Positions 1,172-38,269 of a stretch of DNA of 64,000 nt are shown piece after piece (position 1 is the stretch's first letter; the number at the start of each line of letters is the position of its first letter). The notes under the pieces were generated by a model. The model was given only the letters and a program-made list of their open reading frames with translations. It did not search any database and was not told where the DNA came from. Position numbers and translations under genes: made by a program. The DNA is from Octopus sinensis. Its lineage: Eukaryota. The stretch lies in the NCBI RefSeq assembly GCF_006345805.1, contig NC_043007.1, forward strand, positions 56,668,001-56,732,000. The letters are read 5' to 3'.

Positions 1172-1221
<50 letters not shown>

Positions 1222-1225
<4 letters not shown>

Positions 1226-1455
1226 GTATATCCATCAGAAATACCAGCGTACCAAAGAAAATGTTAAGCGTATATGTGTATGTATGATAAAGAATGTATG
1301 TGTGCATGTAGGTAAGTACTTACACGTATATATACATATTTATATATAAATACACGTACGTCATAAATCATAAATATGTTAATATATTCATATATGTATA
1401 TATATATATATATACATATATATACGCATATATCTATCTTTCTGTCTCTTTCTCA

Positions 1456-1497
<42 letters not shown>

Positions 1498-1771
1498 GTA
1501 TACACACACACACACGCACACACAAGTCAGTGTACATTCGTATTAATGCGTATAACAAATATTTTAAACCTGTTCATAACTACTTCAAAATCATAAGAGT
1601 AAATTCAATAATAATCTTTTTTATAATAATTATTATTACGAGTGTTGTATCTGCTGCTTGAGCTGCTGTTTTTCATCGTCCTCGTCATTTTATTTATTTT
1701 TGTAATGTTTTTTGGGTTTTTTTAAGTTTCGCCTTCTCTCCGTCCCCTTATCATCATCATCATCGTCGTCG

Positions 1772-1803
<32 letters not shown>

Positions 1804-1818
1804 ATCATCATCATCATT

Positions 1819-1849
<31 letters not shown>

Positions 1850-2400
1850 CCAACATCATCAATAACAACAACATTCCTCCTATTATCAATATCACATTTA
1901 TCACTCCTTCCACCTTTACCATAGTCATTATCATCATCATCATCATCGTCATCGTCATCATCATCGTCATCGTCATCATCATCGTCATCGTCATCATCAT
2001 CGTCATCGCTACTGTCAACTAACTAATATATAAGTGTTAATTCCCACGCGTTCTATCCACTTATACATCAACATCTTTGTTTATTTTTTATATTTATCTT
2101 ATTTGTTTTATCGTTATCATAATCATTTATAGCCATCATATTCCCTTCTCTTTCATACCACCTACTCCTTTACCCCTCAATCTTCAACCCCCTCCCGCAC
2201 TAACATCTCCCAACGCCCACCTCAGCATTACAAACAATATAATGAACCTCCTTCTCTCGCAGAGAAATACATACATACACACACACATACACACACATAC
2301 ATACACACTTACATATATACATGCTTATATACATATGTATATATATATCTATATGTGTGCATGTATGTGTGTATGCATGTAAGTTTGTATCTATATATAT

Positions 2401-2447
<47 letters not shown>

Positions 2448-2677
2448 GTATATCCATCAGAAATACCAGCGTACCAAAGAAAATGTTAAGCGTATATGTG
2501 TATGTATGATAAAGAATGTATGTGTGCATGTAGGTAAGTACTTACACGTATATATACATATTTATATATAAATACACGTACGTCATAAATCATAAATATG
2601 TTAATATATTCATATATGTATATATATATATATATACATATATATACGCATATATCTATCTTTCTGTCTCTTTCTCA

Positions 2678-2727
<50 letters not shown>

Positions 2728-2993
2728 ACACACACACACACGCACACACAAGTCAGTGTACATTCGTATTAATGCGTATAACAAATATTTTAACCTGTTC
2801 ATAACTACTTCAAAATCATAAGAGTAAATTCAATAATAATCTTTTTTATAATAATTATTATTACGAGTGTTGTATCTGCTGCTTGAGCTGCTGTTTTTCA
2901 TCGTCCTCGTCATTTTATTTATTTTTGTAATGTTTTTTGGGTTTTTTTAAGTTTCGCCTTCTCTCCGTCCCCTTATCATCATCATCATCGTCG

Positions 2994-3025
<32 letters not shown>

Positions 3026-3628
3026 ATCATCATCATCATTATCATCATCATCATCATCATCATCATTATCATCATCATCATCATCACCAACATCATCAAT
3101 AACAACAACATTCCTCCTATTATCAATATCACATTTATCACTCCTTCCACCTTTACCATAGTCATTATCATCATCATCATCATCGTCATCGTCATCATCA
3201 TCGTCATCGTCATCATCATCGTCATCGTCATCATCATCGTCATCGCTACTGTCAACTAACTAATATATAAGTGTTAATTCCCACGCGTTCTATCCACTTA
3301 TACATCAACATCTTTGTTTATTTTTTATATTTATCTTATTTGTTTTATCGTTATCATAATCATTTATAGCCATCATATTCCCTTCTCTTTCATACCACCT
3401 ACTCCTTTACCCCTCAATCTTCAACCCCCTCCCGCACTAACATCTCCCAACGCCCACCTCAGCATTACAAACAATATAATGAACCTCCTTCTCTCGCAGA
3501 GAAATACATACATACACACACACACATACACACACATACATACACACTTACATATATACATGCTTATATACATATGTATATATATATCTATATGTGTGCA
3601 TGTATGTGTGTATGCATGTAAGTTTGTA

Positions 3629-3660
<32 letters not shown>
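1222..3660. repeat. Tandem duplication of a ~1.22-1.24 kb microsatellite-rich segment (2 copies)
   Basis: tacgtatatccatcagaaataccagcg recurs at ~1222 and ~2445. The duplicated ORFs 1712/2937, 1722/2947 and 2077/3314 confirm it. Breakpoints lie in (TA)n. Confidence 0.92.
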
Positions 3661-9539: not shown

Positions 9540-10690
9540 AACTCTAATGTAACTAAAACTGTATTTTAATGAATATGTTCTCAATAAACTTTCTTATACG
9601 TTTACTCTATGAATTCGCCTTCTGCTTCGATATCTGCTTCAATGCAGAACCGGGACCGTTAACTGCTTGCACTAAAAGGTCCATATGCATTTCGGACGTT
9701 ACGAGGACAAAGTTATGGTATTGTAAAGATGCTGACTCCCTTTCGACGACGTTCCGAACGTAATAGTCCCTGGGATTTAATAACAGTGAGTTTGGAGGCC
9801 ACAAGTTTGGTGTTACAGGATCATAGCGAATATACGACATCCATTCTTGAGATTACGTGAGGTTTGAGACAAGGTGTTGATTTTCGTTGAAGCACGTATG
9901 GCTTTCCACTGCATACTTCATTTATCCCAGGCTTAACAACTGTCTCCAGTATCACAGCGCATTCAGCAACATTAATTCTAAAACTCTGTGGAAACATGCG
10001 AGGTAGCATGATATGACCTTAATTACTCACTGCTCCTAAAACCACTATAGTTGTTGAAAACTTAGTGTGCATCACTCTGAAGATATCGGTAATATTTGCA
10101 CAAACCATCTGTTATTTTCCGTTAGAATTTTCATCGAAGTTTTTCTTATCATGCCATGTTCATAAGCGTTTTTAACCTTATTAATTAACCGCTGGCACAG
10201 ATCAAACAGTTTTCCTCTATTTTTCAAACATAAATTGGCCTTTTCACAGTACATTTGACTTTTATCGAAGCTCTTCGTGCACCACAGTTCTAACAGTCCA
10301 CTTCGACACCTGAAATTCTTTGTCGATGGCCGATATCGTTTTCCCGGAATCATCGTTGATAATATTTTGAACCCGTTAGATGAAAAAATGCAGTGTCCTT
10401 ATGATGTCTAGAACGTCTAGAATGTTTTTGCTTTTTTTTCTTGATTGATAAGGTTGAACCCTTTCCACCAGAGGTTTCCAGTTCTATCCGAACTTGCTCT
10501 ACAAAAGATCTTTCAAAATTTAGAAAATAATTCTAAATCTTTGTGTTTCGCACATATGACATGTCTTCATTTCTTGTATTAGCATTTTATCTACCACGAA
10601 CGATCTGAATGAAAAATGAAACCATTTAATTGGTTTGAAGAGAGTAATATACTGATAACAAAGTGTCCTCAAATAACCCCTACAGCTCAT
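9540..10690 (-). pseudogene. Tc1/mariner (maT/DD37D-like) transposase relic
   Basis: Fragments FPQSFRINVAECAVILETVVKP and YDPVTPNLWPPNSLLLNPRDYYV (WPPNSPDLNPLDY motif), with frameshifts. Confidence 0.8.
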
Positions 10691-10726
<36 letters not shown>

Positions 10727-11819
10727 ATAATATTAGGGAGTGAATCCAAACTTACAGGGAAAAATTAGATTTAGGATTAAATCAAATTTCACAGTATAAA
10801 TATAAATTAAATTAGAGATAAAACCACTATTAGGCAAATCAAACAGTGAAAAACATAAACCAAAACCTAAAAATAAATATAATTAATATAATATACAAAA
10901 TATATAAAATATAAAATTTTAAATTAAATTACTTAAATTTAAAATTTTTAATTTATATATATATATATATATTCATCAGAGATGGTTCCATCACAGATTT
11001 CGCATAAGGCACATGCCTGTCCGAGACTTCACATTTTTCCGCTATATTTCTAGCCTCAAATTGCTTTTTTTTTTTTATATGTAGTCCTTTTCCATTTCTA
11101 AGTTAAGGGTAAAAATAAAGCAACCCTGAGAAACACAGCTGATCTTTATACACAGACGCACAGAATAACAACAATCAAATAAAGACAGCGGAGTGCGCAC
11201 AAATATCAGTGATCTGACTGTCGCCTTGATAAGAGATACCAGTTAGTCTTTTACACCCACTAAGCTCGTTCGTATTAGCCCGAATTGCTGGATAATTTTT
11301 CGTTCCTTTAAGAATACTGTAGAGAGAAAACTTTCCATGGATTGCAATTTAAATCCTAATCTCTATAGCAATTTATTGGTTCAAGAAAACACTGGATTTG
11401 AATTACTTTTAAGTTTTGCGATAATAGATAACAACTCGAGCTGTAACTTCTGAGCCCGAGTCAGGCGCGTGGGATTGATGTCACTACAAATGATATTTTT
11501 GAGGCAGAACTGCCAGACGCTGAACGAAAATAAATGAACTACGACCAGTTATCGAGTTATTGGCTGCAATTACATACTTGAAGTCAGTGTTGGCAGAAAT
11601 TAAATCAGCTTGCAAATATACGTTCATTTTACTAAATTTATGCTCGGGCTAGATCCAAACAGCCCGAGTGCCGGAGTCGCCACTGATGATGAGGGATCAG
11701 TTTCTGACTGAAGAATGAAGGCTTTGAATGACCCATTTGTCTTTTTGTTCGTCCCTTCGTGTATTTCACGTATTTATTTATGTAAAGGTTTATTAATCTA
11801 TATATATATATATAATATG

Positions 11820-11861
<42 letters not shown>

Positions 11862-12041
11862 TAAGCAATAAGGGTTTAGCAACGAGTTGCCTTACCACAT
11901 ACCGAATTTAGAAATAGCAGTCAAAGGGTTATAGCTATTTCTTCTACTAAAAAGGAGATCTCAGTAAAAACAGCATTGGAAGGCAGGACACAAACAGGTA
12001 AGAGAGAATGAATTGACTGCATTTATCATACATTTTTTTAG

Positions 12042-12150
12042 TTATCCACGGACGTACGTTTCGAAATCAAGTTTTTAGGAAAGCATAAGAATTAAATATT
12101 AAATATTAAATATTCTATTTACCGAAACTTCTTTCTCTTCGCGTAGAATA
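12042..12150 (-). ncRNA. Type I hammerhead, extended helix II, core with a 1-nt deletion (CGAAGA)
   Basis: Same fold as 12641-12754, but the plus strand reads tcttcg instead of tcttcag (U4 lost; real or a consensus error). Confidence 0.6.
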
Positions 12151-12640
12151 CTATAATCATAAATGATTATATATTGAATTTTGAGATACCAGAAGGCACC
12201 AACTCAACTCAGTATCAGAGCGAGCTAGAATCCGCAACCTGGTATCACCGAATTCAATTTGTGAATGAAACGATTGTGTTCCAACAGCCCCTTCCCACCC
12301 GCGTGTAGCCAAAACAGATGCTGTGGTCCATCTACTGAGATAAAATATGGTATCCGTAATAATGAAGGGTGAAATAATTAATTTGGAAAAAATTTCAATT
12401 ACACCAAGTAGTCTTCGGCATGTAAAAGCCTCATTCGAGGAAAATTAAGTAATACTAAGCAATAAGGTTTTAGCAACGAGTTGCCTTACCACATACCGAA
12501 TTTAGAAATAGCAGTCAAAGGGTTTTATAGCTATTTTTCTACTCTAAAAAGGGAGATCTCAGTAAAAACAGCATTTGGAAGGCAGACACAAACAGGTAAG
12601 AGAGAATGAATTGACTGCAATCTATCATACATTTTTTTAG

Positions 12641-12754
12641 TTATCCACGGACGTACGTTTCGAAATCAAGTTTTTAGGAAAGCATAAGAATTAAATATTA
12701 AATATTAAATAATTCTATCTTACCGAAACTTCTTTTCTCTTCAGCGTAGAATAA
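12641..12754 (-). ncRNA. Type I hammerhead ribozyme with ~75-nt extended helix II
   Basis: Minus: ttattctacg-CTGAAGA-gaaa...tttc-GAAAC-GTAC-GTC^cgtggataa. Helix II pairs gaaa/tttc, aagttt/aaactt and agaatt/aattct. Confidence 0.8.
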
Positions 12755-13735
12755 TATAATCATAAATGATTATATATTGAATTTTGAGATACCAGAAGGC
12801 ACCAACTCAACTCAGTATCAGGCGAGCTAGAATCCGCAACTGGTATCACCGAATTCAATTTGTGAATGAAACGATTGTGTCAACAGCCCCTTCCCACCCG
12901 CGTGTAGCCAAAACAAGATGCTGTGGTCATCTACTGAGATAAAATATGGTATCCGTAATAATGAAGGGTGAAATTAATTAATTTGGAAAAATTATCAATT
13001 ACAACAAGTAGTCTTCGGCATGTAAAAGCCTCATTCGAGGAAAATTTAAGTAATACTAAGCAATAAGGGTTTAGCAACGAGTTGCCTTACCACATACCGA
13101 ATTTAGAAATAGCAGTCAAAGGGTTATAGCTATTTCTTCTACTAAAAAGGGAGATCTCAGTAAAAACAGCATTTGGAAGGCAGACACAAACAGGTAAGAG
13201 AGAATGAATTGACTGCAATCTATCATACATTTTTTAGTAGAAGAAATAGCTTTTTAGTAGAAGAAATAGCTATAACCCTTTGACTGCTATTTCTAAATTC
13301 GGTATGTGGTAAGGCAACTCGTTGCTAAACCCTTATTGCTTAGTATTACTTAAATTTTCCTCGAATGAGGCTTTTACATGCCGAAGACTACTTGGTGTAA
13401 TTGATAATTTTTCCAAATTAATTAATTTCACCCTTCATTATTACGGATATATATATATATATATATATTAAGGTATGTAGAAAAATACAACATGGACAAG
13501 AACGTATAACTCTTAGAAGACGATACAATAAACATGGACAGGACATTCGAACCCCTCAGTCTTCAGTCAAGAACCGGATCATCGTAGTAATTTCGGCTGA
13601 TTAATCTTGAGATTACTAGATCACGGCCAGCCCTCCAAGAAAAACTAAGCAACGAGCATTAGAAAAACTAAGCTAAATATATATATACAAACACATGTAA
13701 GTATGTATATATGTATATATATACATACATGTATG

Positions 13736-13780
<45 letters not shown>

Positions 13781-14130
13781 TATATATGTAAATATATATA
13801 TGTATTTATATATGTAATATGTATATGTATATATATGTATAGTATATATATGTATATGTATTTCCCTTTGCAAATACTGACAGGACACAGATAGTGTGTC
13901 TATGGCCAGCTGAGGAGTGTGTCCTCCTGGGGCTAAAAACTACAGTAGCATCCACCCTTAGGGTTAGCCATATTTGAATGGCAAAAATACGTCACGATGT
14001 GTTACCGCTACTGTATATAACTCACTTTGATATTTATCATTGTTTGATTTCACTTTTTCAATATCAGCGACAGTGGGCGCTGGAAAAAGTATAAGTATTT
14101 GTGAAGGAAATCTAATTCTCGGCGACAACT

Positions 14131-14189
14131 GTGATTGTCACACGCTGACGAGAGGTCAATACCTCGAAACTCGAGTCCGTGTGTATCAT
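14131..14189 (+). ncRNA. Type I hammerhead ribozyme, copy 1 (intact)
   Basis: gtgat-tgt-cacacg CTGACGA gaggt caat acctc GAAAC TCGA GTC^cgtgtg-t-atcat; predicted cleavage after 14177. Confidence 0.92.
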
Positions 14190-14482
14190 AAGTTGAAGAC
14201 GGGAAGGATGACTTCCCTTTGCAAATACTGACAGGACACAGATAGTGTGTCTATGGCCAGCTGGAGGAGTGTGTCCTCCTGGGGCTAAAAACTACAGTAG
14301 CATCCACCCTTAGGGGTTAGCCATATTGAAATGGCAAAAATACGTCACGATGTGTTACGCTACGGTATATAACTCACTTTGATATTTATCATTGTTTGAT
14401 TTCACTTTTTCAATATCAGCGACAGTGGGCGCTGGAAAAAGTATAAGTATTTGTGAAGGAAATCTAATTCTCGGCGACAACT

Positions 14483-14540
14483 GTGATTGTCACACGCTGA
14501 CGAGAGGTCAATACCTCGAAACTCGAGTCGTGTGTATCAT
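14483..14540 (+). ncRNA. Type I hammerhead ribozyme, copy 2
   Basis: Core identical; one C missing at the GTC/cgtgtg junction. Confidence 0.8.
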
Positions 14541-14833
14541 AAGTTGAAGACGGGAAGGATGACTTCCCTTTGCAAATACTGACAGGACACAGATAGTGTG
14601 TCTATGGCCAGCTGGAGGAGTGTGTCCTCCTGGGGCTAAAAACTACAGTAGCATCCACCCTTAGGGTTAGCCATATTGAAATGGCAAAAATACGTCACGA
14701 TGTGTTACCGCTACTGTATATAACTCACTTTGATATTTATCATTGTTTGATTTCACTTTTTCAATATCAGCGACAGTGGGCGCTGGAAAAAGTATAAGTA
14801 GTTGTGAAGGAAATCTAATTCTCGGCGACAACT

Positions 14834-14892
14834 GTGATTGTCACACGCTGACGAGAGGTCAATACCTCGAAACTCGAGTCCGTGTGTATCAT
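14834..14892 (+). ncRNA. Type I hammerhead ribozyme, copy 3 (intact)
   Basis: Identical to copy 1; predicted cleavage after 14880. Confidence 0.92.
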
Positions 14893-15181
14893 AAGTTGAA
14901 GACGGGAAGGATGACTTCCCTTTGCAAATACTGACAGGACACAGATAGTGTGGTCTATGGCCAGCTGGAGGAGTGTGTCCTCCTGGGGCTAAAAACTACA
15001 GTAGCATACCACCCTTAGGGGTTAGCCATATTGAAATGGCAAAAATACGTCACGATGTGTTACCGCTACTGTATATACTACTTGATATTTATCATTGTTT
15101 GATTTAACTTTTCAATATCAGCGACAGTGGGCGCTGGAAAAATATAGTATTGTGAGGAAAATATAATTCTCGGCGACAACT

Positions 15182-15237
15182 GTGATGTCACGCTGACGAG
15201 AGGTCAATACTCGAAAAACTCGAGTCCGTGTGATCAT
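15182..15237 (+). ncRNA. Type I hammerhead, copy 4 (several indels)
   Basis: CTGACGA retained; helix II 3' strand actc, GAAAAAC and a shortened helix I. Confidence 0.6.
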
Positions 15238-15529
15238 AAGTTGAAGACGGGAAGGATTGACTTTCCTTTGCAAATACTGACAGGACACAATAGTGTGTCT
15301 ATGGCCAGCTGGAGGAGGGTGTCCTCTGGGGCTAAAAACTACAGTAGCATCCACACTTAGGGGTTAGCCATATTGAAATGGCAAAAATACGTCACGATGT
15401 GTTACCGCTCTGTATTAACTCACTTTGATTATATCATTGTTTGATTTCACTTTTTCAATATCAGGACAGTGGGCGCTGGAAAAAAAAAGTATAAAGTATT
15501 GGTGAAGGAATCTAATTTCGGCGACAACT

Positions 15530-15587
15530 GTGATTGTCACACGCTGACGAGAGGTCAATACCTCGAAACTCGAGTCCGGTGTATCAT
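15530..15587 (+). ncRNA. Type I hammerhead ribozyme, copy 5
   Basis: Core, helix II and helix III intact; one T missing in the helix I 3' strand. Confidence 0.8.
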
Positions 15588-15763
15588 AAGTTGAAGACGG
15601 GAAGGATGACCTCCCTTTGCAATACTGAAGGACACAGATAGTGTGTCTATGGCCAGCTGGAGGAGTGTGTCCTCTGGGGCTAAAAACACAGTAGCATCCA
15701 CCCTTAGGAGTTAGCCATATTGAAATGGCAAAAATAGTCACTATATATATATATATATAATAT

Positions 15764-16058
15764 ATTTCAACAATTGAGGGCAAAATTAATTAATTATTAA
15801 TCAATTTCACCAAGGTTCAGTATGCAAAGGGACCATTCAGGCGAATTCAAATTATTACATTATATTAAAAGGGCTTAGTAAAATAAATTACTTTGCCGCA
15901 TACTGAACTCATTAGAAATAGACTAAAAAACTTTTTAAAGCTATTCTAATACTTAAAGAAAATCTTCTCATATATAGTGTTTGCTTAATTCAACTCACAA
16001 AAGTTTGGGGTAAGGACATCTTACCCCCAATTATTTTACTAAGCCCTTTTATATAATA
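15764..16058. mobile_element. Terminal fragment of a divergent relative of the 595-bp family with an inverted short end
   Basis: Homologous to 29634-29967 and to ataaggg...ccacatac...ttagaaatagcag of the 595-bp unit. 16031-16058 inverts about 15860-15888. (TA)n flanks. Confidence 0.7.
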
Positions 16059-16101
16059 TATATATATATATATATATCTGTACACACACATATATATATA
16101 T

Positions 16102-16143
<42 letters not shown>

Positions 16144-16234
16144 ATATATATAATATATATATATACATACAAAACACACTCAGACTCACATTTATTCACA
16201 CCACATCGTATTGGCAAGAAATATATTAAAAATG

Positions 16235-16472
16235 ATTGCAGCGTGGAAGGTGTTTATAAGAAACACACAAAACCGTTAGATTCACTTCAACATTTAAATT
16301 TAATTTGTCAAAATATTTTCCTCGCTTTGAGACCGCTGCATCATGAACAGGTGAACAGGTCGCGGTCTCAAAGAGACGAAAATATTTTGACAAATTAAAT
16401 TTAAATATTGAAGTGAATCTAACGGTTTTGTGTGTTTCTTAAATGGCTTATAAACACCTTCCACGCTGCAAT
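16235..16472. repeat. Long inverted repeat, ~100-bp arms, 25-nt spacer
   Basis: attgcagcgtggaaggtgttt...ctttgagaccgc (16235-16336) pairs with gcggtctcaaag...ccacgctgcaat (16362-16472). Confidence 0.9.
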
Positions 16473-16727
16473 TGTTTTCGTTCCAGCACACGATATCAGA
16501 TTAAGTCACTTGCTATGCAAGTACATCTCCGTAATATTAAAAATGCATTAAACAGATAAAAGAAAAATCCAATAATCAAAACTGAACATAATAAATAAAA
16601 CGAATAACAAAGTATCAATTCATTCTTTAAAACGTTCTTGTCGATTCGAACGTAATATCTAATCGTTGTTGCTTTTCGTCATCGGAGGACACACCCTATC
16701 TTTAGATGATGTATGTTGTTAATACAT

Positions 16728-21137: not shown

Positions 21138-21830
21138 TTGGGTTGGCAACTAAGTTCCCGACGTTTTTTTTAAATTTAAATTTTTTAAACGGTTTAATAA
21201 AAAATAACAACTAATTAATCAATAATGTATTTACCCTTGTTGTTTACAACTTCTTCCCAACGTTTAACAAGATTTTCAATACCGCTTTGGTATTGCCGTG
21301 CAGCAAAAGAACTCTGCCGATTAGGTCTTTTCTCTTGAATAGCCGTGTTGAGCCGTTCCATCTGTTGAACGTAGAGTTTCACGTTGACCGTTTGGTTCCG
21401 TTCAAGAAATTCGTAATGGATAATCCCTTCCAAATCCCACCATAAGCACAACATCGTTTTATGCGGATGAAGATCTTGTTTCAGGCACGGTGTCGCTTGT
21501 TTACCGGGCCTAAGCCATTGCTTACGCTGCTTCATATTGATGTACAGTAACGTCGCCAGTAACGATTCGGTAAAGAAATTGTTGCTTATGTCCATGAGTG
21601 GAGCGGTGACGAGCAAGCAAACCAGCGGAGATTATGGTTCCTTAATTTTTGTTGTTGTCACTTCTGAACCTTTCCCATCGAGTGAAGATGTTTCTCTATA
21701 GCAGTGTGGGAGCATTCCATTTTCTCCAGTTCCTTCGTTGTCTGACAAGAATTTTCGTGCAAAAGTTGGTTTAACCGCTCTTCATAGAACTCAACTGGAC
21801 GGCCAGAACGAGGCGCATTTTTTTAGGTCA
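21138..21830 (-). pseudogene. Mariner (DD34D-type) transposase relic with 3' TIR
   Basis: HKTMLCLWWDLEGIIHYEFL and NAPRSGRP motifs. TIR ttgggttggcaactaagtt starts at 21138 after TA. Confidence 0.85.
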
Positions 21831-21907
21831 AAATGAGGGGGGGAATTTTTAAGCAGAGATGAAACGTGGGTCCATCATTATGAGGTAGAATATATATATA
21901 TATATAT

Positions 21908-22628
21908 CAGGGGAAGTAAAAAAAATTATCCGCATTTTCGACATAACGCATCTCTATTATTGTCACACTGCTTTCTGTGTATGCGTGCTTATAGTTGGTA
22001 CTATTGTGCTCAAGTGATCGAAGTTTGATTCTACCACATAATGATGGACTCACGTTTCATCCCCTCTTAAAAATTCCTCCCCCTCATTGTTGTAGCAATC
22101 GAGTAAACGTTGGGAGACTTCAAGACGTCTGCAGTAAGCTCTCTTGGCACCCATTTTGCACAGACTTTATGAAAGCCGAGCCCATCGTGGATGATTTGAT
22201 AGGTAGAATAATGACTAATCTGCAGAGAACAAGCTACCTCAGTGGTGGAGTTTGACGTGCTCCCTACTTCCTCTTCGTGCGTCACGCTTGTCCGGCCACT
22301 TTTAAACTTCTCGATCCACTCATACACACTTGTACGCAGTAGTGCATTGTCCCCGTATTGAGCTAAAAGACTCCGATGAATTTCAGCACCTGACACACCT
22401 TTCGACCAGAGAAATCGGATCACTGCTCTTTGTTCTTTAGTGCACAGTACTAGTGGAGCGGTCATGCTTATACTGTAAGGCCAGAAAGAAAAATGGCGAG
22501 ATCAGGCTCAAACTTTGATCACGTGACCATAATAATACCAACTATAAGCACACATACGCAGAAGGCAGTGTGACAATAATACACATATCTTATGGCGAAA
22601 GTGCAGATCATTTTTGACTTCCTCTCAT
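21908..22628 (-). mobile_element. Internally deleted mariner with ~130-bp terminal inverted repeats
   Basis: ORF EQRAVIRFLWSKG...SVYEWIEKFKSGRTSV...WVPRELT (mariner HTH, WVPHEL motif). 21908-22040 is an imperfect inverted copy of 22500-22628. TA flanks. Confidence 0.8.
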
Positions 22629-29633: not shown

Positions 29634-29958
29634 ATTTCAACAATTGAGGGTAAAATTAATTAATTATTAATCAATTTCACCAAGTATTCAGTATGTAAAG
29701 GGACCATTATAGGCGAATTCAAAATATTACATTATATATAAGGGCTTAGTAAAATAAATTACTTTGCCACATACTGAACTCATTAGAAATAGCAGCTAAA
29801 GAAATTTCTTCAGCTATTTCTAATACTTAAAGAAGATCTCTCTGAGAGAGATCTTCTTTAAGTATTAGAAATAGCTGAAGAAATTTCTTTAGCTGCTATT
29901 TCTAATGAGTTCAGTATGTGGCAAAGTAATTTATTTTACTAAGCCCTTATATATAATG

Positions 29959-29967
<9 letters not shown>
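29634..29967. mobile_element. Fold-back terminal fragment of the 595-bp-related family; near-perfect palindrome with ~122-bp arms centred on 29844
   Basis: 29723-29843 pairs with 29845-29967 apart from one TA indel; (TA)n on both flanks. Confidence 0.9.
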
Positions 29968-32611: not shown

Positions 32612-34320
32612 TACATACATACAGATAGATATATACATACATACAGATAGATATATATATTCATACATACATACATATAGATAGATATAACTTGATTTCT
32701 ACTAGTATAGCACTGCTTTAAGTAGATAACTAAGAGTTCTCACTTTACAGTTATCTTTATCTTTTTCCTTATATCTGCATCAGTTTTTTGAGAACAGGGA
32801 AATGAATAGTACTTATTCGCTACTTAATTGAGGCTTTATTTAATTTCAACTCACAATTTTTAAATTCTTAATTTTAAATTCTTAATTGTAATATTTAATT
32901 TAATTCCTAACTTAATCTAATTTAAATAGCATAACTCTAATAAATATAATTAGTTACTGTAGCCCCATAATTCTATTTCATAATTAAATAAATAAGGCTA
33001 TTCCCTCGGTGATAATATGATTATCTTCATTATGATAGGCAATCCCCTAACACCTTGTAAATGATCTTATAAGATTTGACTGTAGTCAGTCAATGTATGA
33101 ATAATAACGACAACTCCTTAAGACAATAAAATGAATAAATTAAATAAGTAAATTTTTAATGACTTTTTGATAAGATTATACTTAGATTTTCCTAATGTAT
33201 TTTCTGGTGATTTAGCATCTGACCCCTAACCCTGACTGTGTTATCTCTTTAGATTCTCTTTAAACTCATAGCTGATTTCAACAGCAATAAATTAACGGTT
33301 TACTGGTCAAAAGAATAATATTCCCCTCTAATTCCTAGATGCCTGTTGATTAAAACCAGACTTACAGTCTACTAGCTCTTTGTATAACTAGAACCCTCTT
33401 TTTTTCTTTTTCTTTTTTCCCTTCTTTCCTTTTCTTTCTCTTTTCTCTTTCTTCTTTTTCTTCTTCTTATTCTCTGTTTCCTTTTCTCTCTTTTAGTCCC
33501 CCTTTCCCCCCCCCTTTTTGCTCCCTCCTCCATTATTTTCTCTCTTCTTCTATTCCCTTCTCTATTCTTGGCCGATCTAGTAAGCCCTTCAGCCTTTAAG
33601 AGTTAAATAGCTACAGCCTCTTGTGAATAGCAGTAATGTGATTAATATGGCAAACACCTAATCATATAACAAGGATTGATACCTACCTCATTGTGTTCAA
33701 CCATTGTAAAATTTATCGCCTGTGAATATGAAATTCATCTCCATTCTCTGGAAATTTACATCTACACCATTGGAATCTGTGCATATATACTAAGGATTAA
33801 TTCACCCTCTCTGTAATGCTAATAAGCAGGAATTGAGACCCACCTCGTGTAATTAACAATGGATAAATTTGTCTTCTGTGAGTATATAATCCCTCATCAT
33901 ATCTATTGAAATTCATATGGATTAGGTCACCTTCTCTGTGATGCTATCAAAACTTTTTTAAAATTCTGTGATAAGACTGTATCATCTTTAAAGAACTTTA
34001 ATGAACTTTAGAAATCTGTTTAATTATCTACATTACTTCATGAGTATAGCCTCAAACACTAGGATGTCTAGAGAACTTACATGTATTTTAGCTGATGAGT
34101 ACGGGACTCGTTTATATGCTGTAATCTTTGCAACTTTTAATAAACCTGTCCTTGTATGAAACGATCGTACTAAAAACCTATCCATTCTGTTGCTTCTTTC
34201 TCGCTTATAATCACCCCACATTACTGTATTGTTAAATCAGTATAGTTTTTTTTTGGTGCATCTAAGTTAGGTACCATATTCAAGTAAATTTTTTTAAATT
34301 AACTTGAATCTTTATTGCTC

Positions 34321-34395
<75 letters not shown>

Positions 34396-34944
34396 CAGGA
34401 TCAGCAAAAATCTGACACATTTGTAGGTTAAATAAAAGGCAAATGAAGTAAAGAAACAAAAAAGTGTTTTTATTTTAAAAAAGTACATATAATGCTATTT
34501 TGTTTCATTATGTTTTAAAAATTAAATCAGTCAAATGGGATCCATTATTGTCCACAACTGTCGAAGGCGTTCACGAAAGTTGTCAATAACTCGGCAGGTC
34601 ATTTCATGTGGAATGGCAGTAATTTCTTGACGAATTGCATCTTAAGTTCTGGCGGTGCGAGGTCGGCCGGTTGATTTTCGTTCAATGCAGATCCAGTAGC
34701 TCTGAAGTTGGTAACCCATAACAAGATCGTGTTTCGAGCTGGTACGGGATCATGTCTACCAAGATTGAAGTGCAAACGGAACGCTCTTTGTGTTGCAGTT
34801 ACAAAATCGTTTGTTTTGATAAACGTTTCCACAATGAAAGCGCGATGCTCACCAGTCCAATTCATGGCAGCAGCAACTGAAAAAGAAACGAAAAACAATG
34901 CCTTTTATTTAACCTACAAATGTGTCAGATCATTTTGCCTGACC

Positions 34945-34947
<3 letters not shown>
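34396..34947 (-). mobile_element. Deletion-derived Tc1/mariner element (DD41D/rosa-like N-terminal HTH) with ~49-bp TIRs and TA flanks
   Basis: TIR core tctgacacatttgtaggttaaataaaaggca at both ends; ORF MNWTGEHRAFIVETF...NTILLWVTNFRATGSAL. Confidence 0.85.
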
Positions 34948-35498: not shown

Positions 35499-38269
35499 TA
35501 GTTAGTTAGTTAGTTAGTTAATTTGGCTCAAAAGCAAACAGCAAGGCCATGTAGGGGGACATTGAGTTAAGTACAGGGTGGTGTTCATGTAAAGAGTTCA
35601 GGCCACTTGAGGTCAAGGGAGGCTTTGAACAAAGCGGTCGTCGGCATCTTCACCATCTCGTCTGGCAGCTTGTTCCACGGATCCGCAACCTGGACGGAGA
35701 AAGCTCCTCTCCTTCGATTGAGATGAAATCGTCGCAGGTAGAGCTTTTCGGAATGACCCCGCAGCCGACGCTCCGGAGCAGGAGTGAAGAACAGCTCTTT
35801 CGAGAGGTTACACTTCCCGCTTATGATGTTGTGGGCGAGAATGAGATCACCACGGCGGCGGCGGCGTTTTTCAAGAGAATAAAGGTCGAGCGTCCTCAGC
35901 CTTTCTTCGTAGGACAAATTTTTGAGACCATGAACCATGCGGGTAGCCAGCCTCTGGACTCTTTCGAGATGCTGTATGTCTTTGAGAAGATAAGGAGAAG
36001 AGGCTTGAATCCCATACTCCAATATGGGTCTCACCAGCGTGACATAGAGTGGCAGGAATATGGCTGCTGTGAGCATTCCGAATGACCGTCGAATCAAAAA
36101 CAGAATTCCGCGCGCTTTGTTGGCAGCATGGACGCACTGGGCCGAAGGCGAAAAGGAGGAATCTACCAAGATACCCAGGTCCTTTACTTGATCGGTCCTC
36201 TCCAGCAGCAGACGACCGGCTCGAAATCAAGTTGAGTTGCAGGAGTAGAGCCGACAGGCAGATGACAGCACTTTGACACGTTCAGACACAGGTCCCAATC
36301 GTTAGACCACTTCCAAATTTGGTGGAGGCATCGACGAAGATCCTCTATACTACCGCGAGGAGCGACCAGTTTGATATCGTCGGCAAATAGAAGGGTTTGT
36401 TGCGTGAGGTCGTCGGGCAAGTCATTTATGAAGACTAAGAAAACAAGGGCCCAAGCACTGAACCTTGAGGCACGCCACTGCTCGCACTGGAGACGTCGGA
36501 CCGCGAACCATTAACTTGAACTTGGAAGGAGCGATCTGAGAGGAAGGCACCAACCCATCGTACAATATCCGGATGGAAACTATATGCTTGAAGCTTGACA
36601 AGTAGTAGGCGGTGGTTTACCGAGTCAAAAGCTTTGGCAAAGTCCAATAAAACGATGTCAACAGCATCACTATCATCGAGGATGCGCGTCACCAATTCTT
36701 CCATTACTAGTAAGTTGGTCAAGCATGATCTCTTCGGCACGAAGCCGTGTTGGGAATCAGTGATCGAGGCTGTGTTTAGGAGGTGGAGCATCATACTTTT
36801 CTTAAGGATGGTTTCGAACATCTTGCTGATTATTGATGTAAGGGAAACCGGTCGGTAGTTAAGCGGGTCTTCGCGGCTCCCTTTCTTGAAAATTGGGCAG
36901 ATTATCGCTGTTCTCCAGTCTGCAGGTATAACACCCGTCGCCAATGACATATTGAATAGTCGTGTTAAGGGCTCGCAGATGACCGGAGCCAACGCTTTGA
37001 TAACCCGTGGGTGTATGCGTCAGGGCCGTGACCCTTGTTGACATCGAGGCCTTGAATAACACACTTGACTTCGTCCCGCGTGATGATCAATCGAAGCATT
37101 GGAGGTACCGATCTATCAAATGGAGGGGGTCACGACCATCATCTTGTTTGAAAATAGTTGAAAAAGCCTCAGCAAATAATTGACTCTGTTGATAAGGGTC
37201 CTCAATCGATACGCCTGTTGAGTCTACCAACGTTGCAATCTGGTTGTTCAAGCGGGAATTCCGCTGGACATGGGCAAAGAAGGTTTTTGGATTGCTACTG
37301 GCATTGCCGCGATTTTGTATTCATAACTGAAGCGTTCTTTCTTTTCAATTTTCACGGCTCGGTCTCGTTGAGTTTTGTACACCTCAAAAGCTGCAGTCGA
37401 ATCCAGATTTTTGAATTCAGCCCAAGCAATATCTCTGAGTCGACGTTCTCGTTTAACCTTCTTCGTCACCCAGGGCTTTTGTTTCTTCCTCTTGGGAAGC
37501 CCAACGGGAACTGCCTGGTCAGTCAAACAGATTACATATGCTTTGAGGGATGACCATAGTTCGTCAATTGAGGACAACGTCATCAGGGATCGCCAGTCCA
37601 GAAGCGCGGAAGCCTCGGTTAGAATTTCAAGATTAATTGCAGAGAAGACTCTACGTGGCAGCGAAGTAATCGTGGGCGTGGAAAAATTTGTGTGCATGAC
37701 GAACTTCAGGACCGCATGATCACTCTTGGCAAGAGGGGCGCACACAGATACGTCTAACACTGATCTTGGATAGCGGGAGAATACCAGATCTAGCATAGAT
37801 GGCCGCTGCCCAGACCGATGCCTAGTCGGATATTCAACATGTTGCGATAGAAAACAATCTTCAGCCACGTCAAGAAGGGCCTGGCCGAACCGGGAAGATG
37901 TTGTACAACTTGATGCGGGCCAATCGATCGTGGGAGCGTTGAAGTCGCCTAGTACCAAGCAGTCATGCGAAGCTGAAACGAATCTTATCGCTTCGAGTAG
38001 ATGAGCATCGTCCTGGGGGTCGGCTAGAGGCGGCCTGTAGACAGCCAACACGGGCAGGCAAAACTCAGATAGGCTCAGCTTGCAATAGACGGCATCGAAT
38101 TTGGTTGTAGGTTGAGCATTTGTGGGTAGAATACCGCAGGACGGTTTGTGCTCAAACTTAACATACACAGCAACACCTCCACCTCGCCTTTTTCCTCTGT
38201 CACATCTGAAAAGGACGTAGCCCTGCAGGTGGATTTCTGAGTCCTTTACTGCTGGAGTCAGCCAAGTCT
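35499..38269 (-). mobile_element. CR1/L2-type LINE ORF2 (APE endonuclease + reverse transcriptase), 5'-truncated, frameshifted, with (AACT)n 3' tail
   Basis: ETWL, VYRPP, GDFNAP, LDLVF, YRPVSLTS, QHGF, DFAKAFDSV, GVPQGSVLGP and LFADD motifs across ORFs 37248-38168, 36435-36992, 36184-36420 and 35585-36169. Tail (tagt)n at 35499-35520. Confidence 0.95.

Follow-up and report, generated by a model that had tools for sequence, protein, structure and literature searches.

What kind of element carries a type I hammerhead motif whose helix II spans 76 nt? The question is raised by a tandem array at 11859-13239 of a 64,000-nt stretch of Octopus sinensis DNA (RefSeq assembly GCF_006345805.1, contig NC_043007.1, positions 56,668,001 to 56,732,000 of the forward strand), which is referred to here as the window and whose coordinates are counted from its first letter. 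Repeat comparison within this 64-kb window revealed direct repeats spaced 594-603 nt at 11859-13239, and the array consists of 2.3 head-to-tail copies of a non-coding unit (594, 601 and ~185 nt), with copy 2 sharing 95.4% identity with copy 1 in BLAST. The array, hereafter the 595 array, was not listed by Tandem Repeats Finder (TRF) because the longest period of that program is 500. In our interpretation the locus is probably a single insertion of a ~600-nt non-coding, non-autonomous Penelope-type 'non-LTR retrozyme' (LTR, long terminal repeat) with an extended-helix-II hammerhead. The extended helix II in a type I hammerhead of a retrozyme or Penelope-type element is the new feature, while the remainder is of a known kind.

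The hammerhead motif of copy 2

The hammerhead lies on the minus strand of copy 2, where the string reads UCUACG-CUGAAGA-[76 nt]-GAAA-C-GUAC-G-UC^CGUGGA, and a second, defective version of it lies in copy 1. The corresponding features, with the evidence for each, are as follows.

12644-12750, minus strand: intact type I hammerhead motif of copy 2 (descriptor, base-by-base coordinates, minimum free energy (MFE) fold and pair probabilities)
12662-12737, minus strand: helix II, 76 nt with a GC content of 21% (folding, pair probabilities and composition)
12045-12147, minus strand: defective hammerhead of copy 1 (copy alignment, sequence check and folding)

Following the minus strand, the 5' strand of helix I (UCUACG, 12750-12745) forms six base pairs with its 3' strand (CGUGGA, 12649-12644), the two halves of the core are CUGAAGA (12744-12738) and GAAA (12661-12658), and CGUACG of helix III (12657-12652) is followed by UC (12651-12650), with the cleavage site predicted between 12650 and 12649, after GUC. 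All of the invariant hammerhead positions are found in copy 2, including G10.1-C11.1, A15.1-U16.1 and C17. The conserved core (C3 U4 G5 A6 N7 G8 A9, G12 A13 A14, A15.1-U16.1 and H17) is complete in copy 2 and incomplete in copy 1. In the MFE fold and pair probabilities of copy 2, three helices surround the core, with helix I open-ended and helix II closed by G10.1-C11.1. Helix III proper is of 1-2 bp, and A-CGUACG-U forms a perfect 8-nt palindrome, which appears suited to the formation of a double hammerhead by two tandem copies. A palindromic helix III is also observed in the family of 351-nt units that forms a neighbouring array (ACUCGAGU) and in a further motif at 34086 (ACGAUCGU).

Helix II is built from a 4-bp base (GAAA/UUUC, including G10.1-C11.1), a 2 x 2 internal loop, a 6-bp stem (AAGUUU/AAACUU) and then imperfect AU-rich stems, with three 7-nt repeats (AAUAUUU) at its tip. 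When folded alone it forms a single closed hairpin of -13.8 kcal/mol (z = -2.5; two of 200 shuffles were as good). The hammerhead fold is the MFE structure of the 136-nt segment, and in the context of a 601-nt transcript the pair probabilities are 0.56-0.76 for helix I and 0.91-0.996 for helix II. Beyond the 6-bp helix I there is a bulge, and beyond the 4-bp base of helix II the 2 x 2 internal loop. Judged from the sequence, the architecture of copy 2 is that of a canonical hammerhead with ~66 nt added at the position normally occupied by loop 2, which gives this arm roughly tenfold its usual length. The original prediction of a minus-strand hammerhead in copy 2, with a hairpin of ~75 nt as its helix II and one core nucleotide missing from copy 1, is in agreement with these data: each core position and helix coordinate was verified, helix II measured 76 nt and formed a closed hairpin, and the missing nucleotide was identified as U4 at 12141 by both alignment and sequence. 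Its expectation that standard searches would miss the motif was likewise borne out by Rfam, as described below.

A descriptor that demanded the core, a helix I of no fewer than 5 bp, a hairpin for helix III and a helix II closed by 3 bp or more and not exceeding 160 nt yielded four motifs in the window, two of which are in the 351-nt array, one at 12644-12750 and one at 34086. Dinucleotide shuffles of the window gave a mean of 0.013 descriptor matches per 64 kb on both strands, with any match at all in four of the 300 shuffles. When a palindromic helix III was required and helix I was relaxed to 4 bp, the expectation was 0.035 per window, and scaled to the 1.4-kb array the expectation is ~0.001. 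With only 0.013-0.035 matches expected per shuffled window, the motif at 12644-12750 is therefore not a chance string.

Insertion architecture, relatives and RNA sense

The array is part of a larger composite structure lying between (TA)n tracts, and two diverged relatives of it, referred to here as family B, are found elsewhere in the window. T1 and T2 denote two end positions that recur among these insertions.

11799-11860, no strand: (TA)n microsatellite next to the sense array (sense being minus) on its 3' side, the target tract (TRF and sequence)
11859-12452, minus strand: unit copy 1, 594 nt, the 3'-most copy, ending at boundary T2 (CTAAGCAATAAGG on the plus strand) directly on (TA)n (repeat comparison and BLAST)
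12351-12548, minus strand: 3' domain of ~200 nt (T2 to T1 region), with 68-71% identity to family B and a conserved predicted structure
12453-13053, minus strand: unit copy 2, 601 nt, 34% GC (repeat comparison and BLAST)
13054-13239 (13235/13239 in BLAST), minus strand: partial unit copy 3, the 5'-most piece of the sense array (BLAST and sequence)
13231-13271, no strand: head-to-head junction with a 20-nt direct duplication (TTTTTAGTAGAAGAAATAGC twice; TRF and sequence)
13250-13449, plus strand: inverted 5'-truncated copy, the reverse complement of 12950-13149 (199/200)
13450-13470, no strand: (TA)n on the opposite side of the insertion (sequence)
15766-16060, no strand: second family B insertion, between (TA)n and right after the 351-nt array, with a short inverted end at 16031-16060
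29636-29965, no strand: family B insertion, with an inverted copy (29636-29843, ending at T1) and a sense copy (29845-29965, ending near T2) arranged head to head

Read in the sense (minus) direction, the order of the 595 locus is (TA)n, the inverted 5'-truncated copy, the head-to-head junction, the 2.3 units and again (TA)n. At the junction (13231-13271), TTTTTAGT is a microhomology that the sense array shares with the inverted copy, and the 3' end of the inverted copy (13250-13449) is T1 (...TTACGGATA), which abuts (TA)n. The element had originally been thought to end at 13237; this end has to be moved, since the inverted 200-nt copy at 13250-13449 also belongs to it. The remaining claims about the array stand: the ~595-nt tandem family agrees with the direct repeats of 594-603 nt and the BLAST copies, BLAST detected no similarity between this unit and the 351-nt family, and the proposed distance of ~400 bp between the two arrays was measured as ~412 bp (13449 to 13862), with TA tracts holding both.

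The two family B insertions share 68-71% identity with the 3' domain of the 595 unit over ~200 nt, and the hammerhead part is absent from both. The arms of the insertion at 29636-29965, which lies between (TA)n tracts, are 99.6% complementary, and the insertion at 15766-16060 is 90% identical to 29636-29839. In all three insertions, including that of the 595 unit, (TA)n is present on both sides, the layout is head to head and the inverted copy ends at the homologous T1 within 1-2 nt, with the sense copy ending at roughly T2. The resulting one-sided extension from T2 to T1 is ~87-104 nt in the 595 and family B insertions. The same ends and the same layout thus recur in other (TA)n tracts, and the three are therefore regarded as independent insertions of a mobile family. 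An assembly artefact was considered as the source of the inverted arm and was rejected, as the same head-to-head layout is present at two diverged family B loci. Searches of the window with nhmmer, using the unit and a profile of the 3' domain, returned no further members.

The surroundings of these insertions are also rich in inserted sequence. The interval 10690-16170 is a long (TA)n-rich region with at least five separate inserts (~10727-10950, 10970-11798, the 595 element, 13471-13676, and the 351-nt array together with 15766-16060) and looks like a hotspot of nested insertion. Three of these inserts (those at 10727, 10970 and 13471) are not repeated in any other part of the window.

Folded as a circle, the cleavage-to-cleavage monomer of 599 nt on the minus strand reached an MFE of -141.5 kcal/mol (z = -3.7; 100 shuffles), with 61% of its nucleotides paired and hammerhead helices I and II kept, whereas the complementary polarity reached only -117.5 kcal/mol and is 24 kcal/mol less stable. 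The monomer of the 351-nt neighbour behaves in the same manner (z = -5.4). The consensus structure of the 3' domain and family B contains 41 pairs, five of which persist although both partners have changed, while several G-U pairs of this domain form only on the minus strand. Three independent lines, namely the asymmetry in folding energy, the G-U pairs and where the inverted copy lies, support minus as the modelled RNA sense, which is the same strand as that of the hammerhead. The unit has a GC content of 34-35% and a longest stop-free stretch of 95 amino acids, and the joined translations of its longer open stretches gave no match among 5.8 billion proteins. ARAGORN found no indication of an origin of the unit from a tRNA or a short interspersed nuclear element (SINE), and no tRNA genes are present in the window.

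The sense array begins, at its 5' end, 8 nt downstream of the position that corresponds to the cleavage site (12641 versus 12650|12649), and in the 351-nt array the distance from its own site to the start (13862) is 35 nt. By our own estimate, the joint chance probability of both array 5' ends lying so near to cleavage sites is ~0.003 (one-sided). This is a circumstantial hint of cleavage in vivo and suggests that the template RNAs may have had ribozyme-made 5' ends.

Comparison with known elements and alternative explanations

Focusing on the elements to which the locus can be compared, metazoan non-LTR retrozymes consist of tandemly repeated units with a type I hammerhead, have a low GC content and are expressed as self-paired circular RNAs (Cervera & de la Pena 2020, PMC7229834; PMC7761336). 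Their unit range was given as 150-450 nt (PMC7229834), and more recently as 51-972 bp with mostly no more than seven units per array and a relationship to the pseudo-LTRs (pLTRs) of Penelope-like elements (PLEs) (Li, Clavereau & Pollet 2026, bioRxiv 10.64898/2026.07.22.740005). The 595 locus shares with retrozymes the non-coding head-to-tail units with a type I hammerhead, the GC content below 45%, the self-paired monomer and the short palindromic helix III; its unit of 594-601 nt is inside the range of 51-972 bp, although above that of 150-450 nt, and another such array adjoins it. It differs from them in its hammerhead, which has a helix II of 76 nt compared with ~4 bp and a loop of 4-6 nt and is missed by Rfam and by standard descriptors, in having only 2.3 units, and in its inverted 5'-truncated copy and (TA)n-specific ends, neither of which is part of the published description of retrozymes. 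Measured against the tandem arrangement of retrozymes, the locus has two full units and 0.3 of a third, with one hammerhead intact and one lacking a single core base.

PLE insertions are characterized by 5'-truncated partial tandems, often with an inverted 5'-truncated copy beside the 5' end, and by a one-sided 'tail' of 30-40 bp (Craig et al. 2021, PMC8557442). Their non-autonomous derivatives give multicopy head-to-tail insertions, (TA)n is the preferred target of Naiad and probably of Neptune elements, and such insertion features are not seen in the target-primed reverse transcription of long interspersed nuclear elements (LINEs; PMC8557442). The 595 locus resembles PLEs in its partial tandem (pLTR-like), its inverted 5'-truncated copy at the 5' end, its (TA)n target and, apart from its greater length, its one-sided 3' extension, as well as in its sense-strand type I hammerhead with a palindromic helix III, and a helix II that is 'larger than usual' is itself a trait of PLE hammerheads (PMC4209133). 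The helix II of PLE hammerheads is, however, of 6-8 bp, compared with 76 nt at the 595 locus, and 'long helix II' in the literature that was retrieved likewise means 6-8 bp. Naiads are reported to have no canonical hammerheads; they include cases of 'HHR_half_core', with halves 35-50 nt apart, that 'do not fit the current descriptors' (PMC8557442), and the 595 motif shows how such a half-core case might look when the intervening sequence is a hairpin.

Superimposed on the canonical type I hammerhead (RF00163; Schistosoma and newt satellites), the motif of copy 2 shows the same core, G10.1-C11.1, A15.1-U16.1 and C17, a helix I of 6 bp, a helix II base of 4 bp and a palindromic loop capping a helix III of 1-2 bp, so that a double-hammerhead form is possible; it differs in the ~66-nt structured extension in place of loop 2 and in lying below the reportable Rfam threshold. 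In metazoan type I hammerheads with the capacity to act as dimers, helix III typically has 1-2 bp and its loop is palindromic (Cervera & de la Pena 2014, PMC4209133). The 351-nt array (13862-15741) shares the bases proximal to helix I (ACG|CUGA ... GUC|CGUG), the helix III design (ACUCGAGU compared with ACGUACGU), the (TA)n flanks and a 5' end just downstream of the cleavage site, whereas it lies on the opposite strand, has a normal helix II of 14 nt and no inverted copy, and is dissimilar outside the ribozyme core.

An element of this type would be propagated in several steps. The tandem units would be transcribed with the minus strand as sense, and the hammerhead would cleave the transcript after GUC (12650|12649 and its equivalents) to release an RNA of 599 nt whose ends are a 5'-OH and a 2',3'-cyclic phosphate. 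A host RNA ligase would then circularize this RNA, and the reverse transcriptase/GIY-YIG endonuclease of a PLE, acting in trans, may copy it into (TA)n. Such copying in trans could account for the partial tandem, the unequal ends and the inverted 5'-truncated copy of the locus.

Several observations weigh against this interpretation. In addition to U4 (CGAAGA at 12141), copy 1 has lost three single nucleotides in the 5' strand of helix II, which no longer forms a hairpin (z = 0.11), and only one intact hammerhead of this kind is left in the window; GAAACGUACGUC is intact in copy 1, with the cleavage-site equivalent at 12051|12050. The two copies differ at 21 single-base indel positions, 15 of which are beside an identical base, versus six substitutions, and the 351-nt copies likewise differ mainly by 1-nt indels. 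Differences dominated by indels suggest consensus errors of a long-read assembly, which would make this a noisy one; because of this pattern the defect of copy 1 is not necessarily real, and single-base defects in 11859-15741 should be read cautiously. In copy 2, the 136-nt segment is no more stable than its own shuffles (z = -0.34), helix III hardly forms in the monomer (probability of 0.03 in the 601-nt context), no loop-loop tertiary contact was recognizable and no conserved loop 1-loop 2 sequence could be assigned. The 66-nt extension, whose tip carries the 3 x 7-nt slippage repeat, could be junk that is tolerated and reduces activity. Rfam RF00163 (Hammerhead_1) was silent on 12644-12750 both at the gathering score (34 bits) and at E <= 10, because of the ~62-nt insertion in helix II; in E-value mode (11700-16200 and the whole window) Rfam did find the 351-nt family, at 32.2 bits and thus below the gathering score of 34, and at the gathering score the whole window gave no match. 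No relatives from outside the window were found in the metagenome, viral, prokaryotic and predicted-protein collections. Metagenome scans with the core halves and a variable gap, or with the 3' half and helix I, gave none, nor did scans of viral contigs or a scan of prokaryotic genomes with a degenerate pattern covering both the 595 family and family B, and a literature string search for the three helix III motifs returned only an unrelated primer. Evidence of covariation in helix II is likewise absent, with only two full copies, differing by 1-nt indels, at hand for such a comparison. The one-sided extension of ~87-104 nt is longer than the 30-40 bp of PLEs, and the larger open reading frames of the window include none for a PLE reverse transcriptase or GIY-YIG endonuclease, the sole reverse transcriptase there being that of an AP-endonuclease (APE) LINE. 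Finally, the 3' end of the insertion, T1, is ~300 nt from the cleavage site, and priming was therefore not begun at a ribozyme-made 3' end.

Some of these points would also be accounted for by a fossil ribozyme, in which an ancestor carried a hammerhead, the motif is now dead through expansion of helix II (by insertion or slippage) and decay, and the array is inert, its tandem structure arising from PLE-style integration alone and not from circular RNA. The loss of U4 and the collapse of helix II in copy 1, the repeat at the tip of helix II, the lack of recognizable loop-loop contacts and the defined 3' end at T1, which implies that ribozyme-made 3' ends are not the priming ends, are all in its favour, and the minimal hammerheads of PLEs are known to cleave poorly in vitro (PMC4209133). 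However, copy 2 retains its entire core and G10.1-C11.1, together with a helix I of 6 bp and a perfect palindrome of 8 nt, which would not be expected under neutral decay, the defects of copy 1 may be assembly indel errors, and the 5' end of the array is 8 nt from the cleavage site; we consider a fossil unlikely. Much less credit still is given to a coincidental hammerhead-like string in an ordinary tandem duplication or satellite of AT-rich DNA. AU pairs are cheap in such a sequence, and the z-score of the 136-nt fold, the silence of Rfam and the single intact instance would suit such a coincidence, but it is opposed by the expectation of 0.013-0.035 matches per window (~0.001 for the 1.4-kb array), by the location of the motif on the strand that was independently identified as the RNA sense, by the mobility of the family and by a bona fide hammerhead array only 400 bp away, whose bases next to helix I (ACG-CUGA...GUC-CGUG) and helix III design are the same.

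The other explanation that we regard as very improbable is a SINE-like element moved by an APE LINE, with the inversion produced by 'twin priming' and with the hammerhead having no role in the life cycle. L1-type twin priming gives 5' inversions. The sole reverse transcriptase in the window is indeed that of the APE-type LINE at 35585-38168, and many APE nucleases suit AT-rich targets, but the insertion has no poly(A) or LINE-like 3' tail, is multicopy and head to tail, and has a one-sided 3' extension in common with the two other independent insertions; moreover, its inverted and sense arms are the same sequence (perfect palindromes) and not adjacent segments of an RNA. The Penelope-type retrozyme is thus retained as the preferred explanation of the 595 locus.

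The window contains a third hammerhead-like motif, at 34086-34175 on the plus strand, which reads UUUUAG-CUGAUGA-[59-nt helix II]-GAAA-C-GAUC-G-UA^CUAAAA. Its helix II, when folded alone, is a closed hairpin (z = -3.15). The motif is single-copy, lies upstream of a (TA)n tract at a distance of ~150 nt, is unrelated in sequence to the 595 family and was not detected by Rfam. Two unrelated long-helix-II motifs, at 12644-12750 and 34086-34175, are therefore found in one window. It is conceivable, though we would put it no higher than a speculation that is more doubtful than the retrozyme itself, that hammerheads with a long-hairpin helix II of 60-80 nt form an overlooked class in (TA)n-targeting Penelope-type elements and their non-autonomous derivatives. 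PLE clades 'lacking canonical hammerheads', such as Naiads, could carry extended ribozymes, and the extended arm might itself be functional, perhaps by binding a protein or reverse transcriptase or by regulating cleavage.

Animal hammerhead censuses use short-helix-II descriptors and covariance models, and would undercount both ribozymes and retrozymes if extended variants are real and active. If this is true, the reports that hammerheads are missing from some Penelope-like clades need to be re-examined. The 595 locus also provides structural evidence, from an invertebrate-like genome, of a hammerhead tandem element integrating in PLE fashion. This PLE-like integration supports the proposal, made so far from vertebrate phylogenies, that animal retrozymes derive from PLEs and are non-autonomous.

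Other features of the window

The window has a GC content of 35%, more than 150 microsatellite rows in 64 kb, and contains Mos1-type mariner fragments and an APE LINE. In E-value mode, Rfam additionally gave ~140 matches to miRNA and snoRNA families (mir-297, mir-3149, mir-466 and others), all of which fall on TA/CA-type microsatellites and are artefacts. Close to the motif at 34086-34175, an element of ~550 bp at 34396-34947 lies inside (TA)n and has terminal inverted repeats with a perfect 32-nt core (34410-34441 and 34899-34930); it is probably a non-autonomous DNA transposon of the Tc1/mariner type. A foldback resembling a miniature inverted-repeat transposable element is present at 16229-16478, where 80-nt arms (96% complementary, with a 25-nt spacer) lie inside a second 32-nt inverted pair. 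The LINE fragments (Exo_endo_phos_2 and RVT_1) and the Mos1-type mariner fragments (Transposase_1 and HTH_48) are located at 35585-38168 and 21215-22465, both on the minus strand. A tandem duplication of ~1.22 kb at ~1190-3660 includes several microsatellites, with an identity between its copies that reaches 100% over 300 nt.

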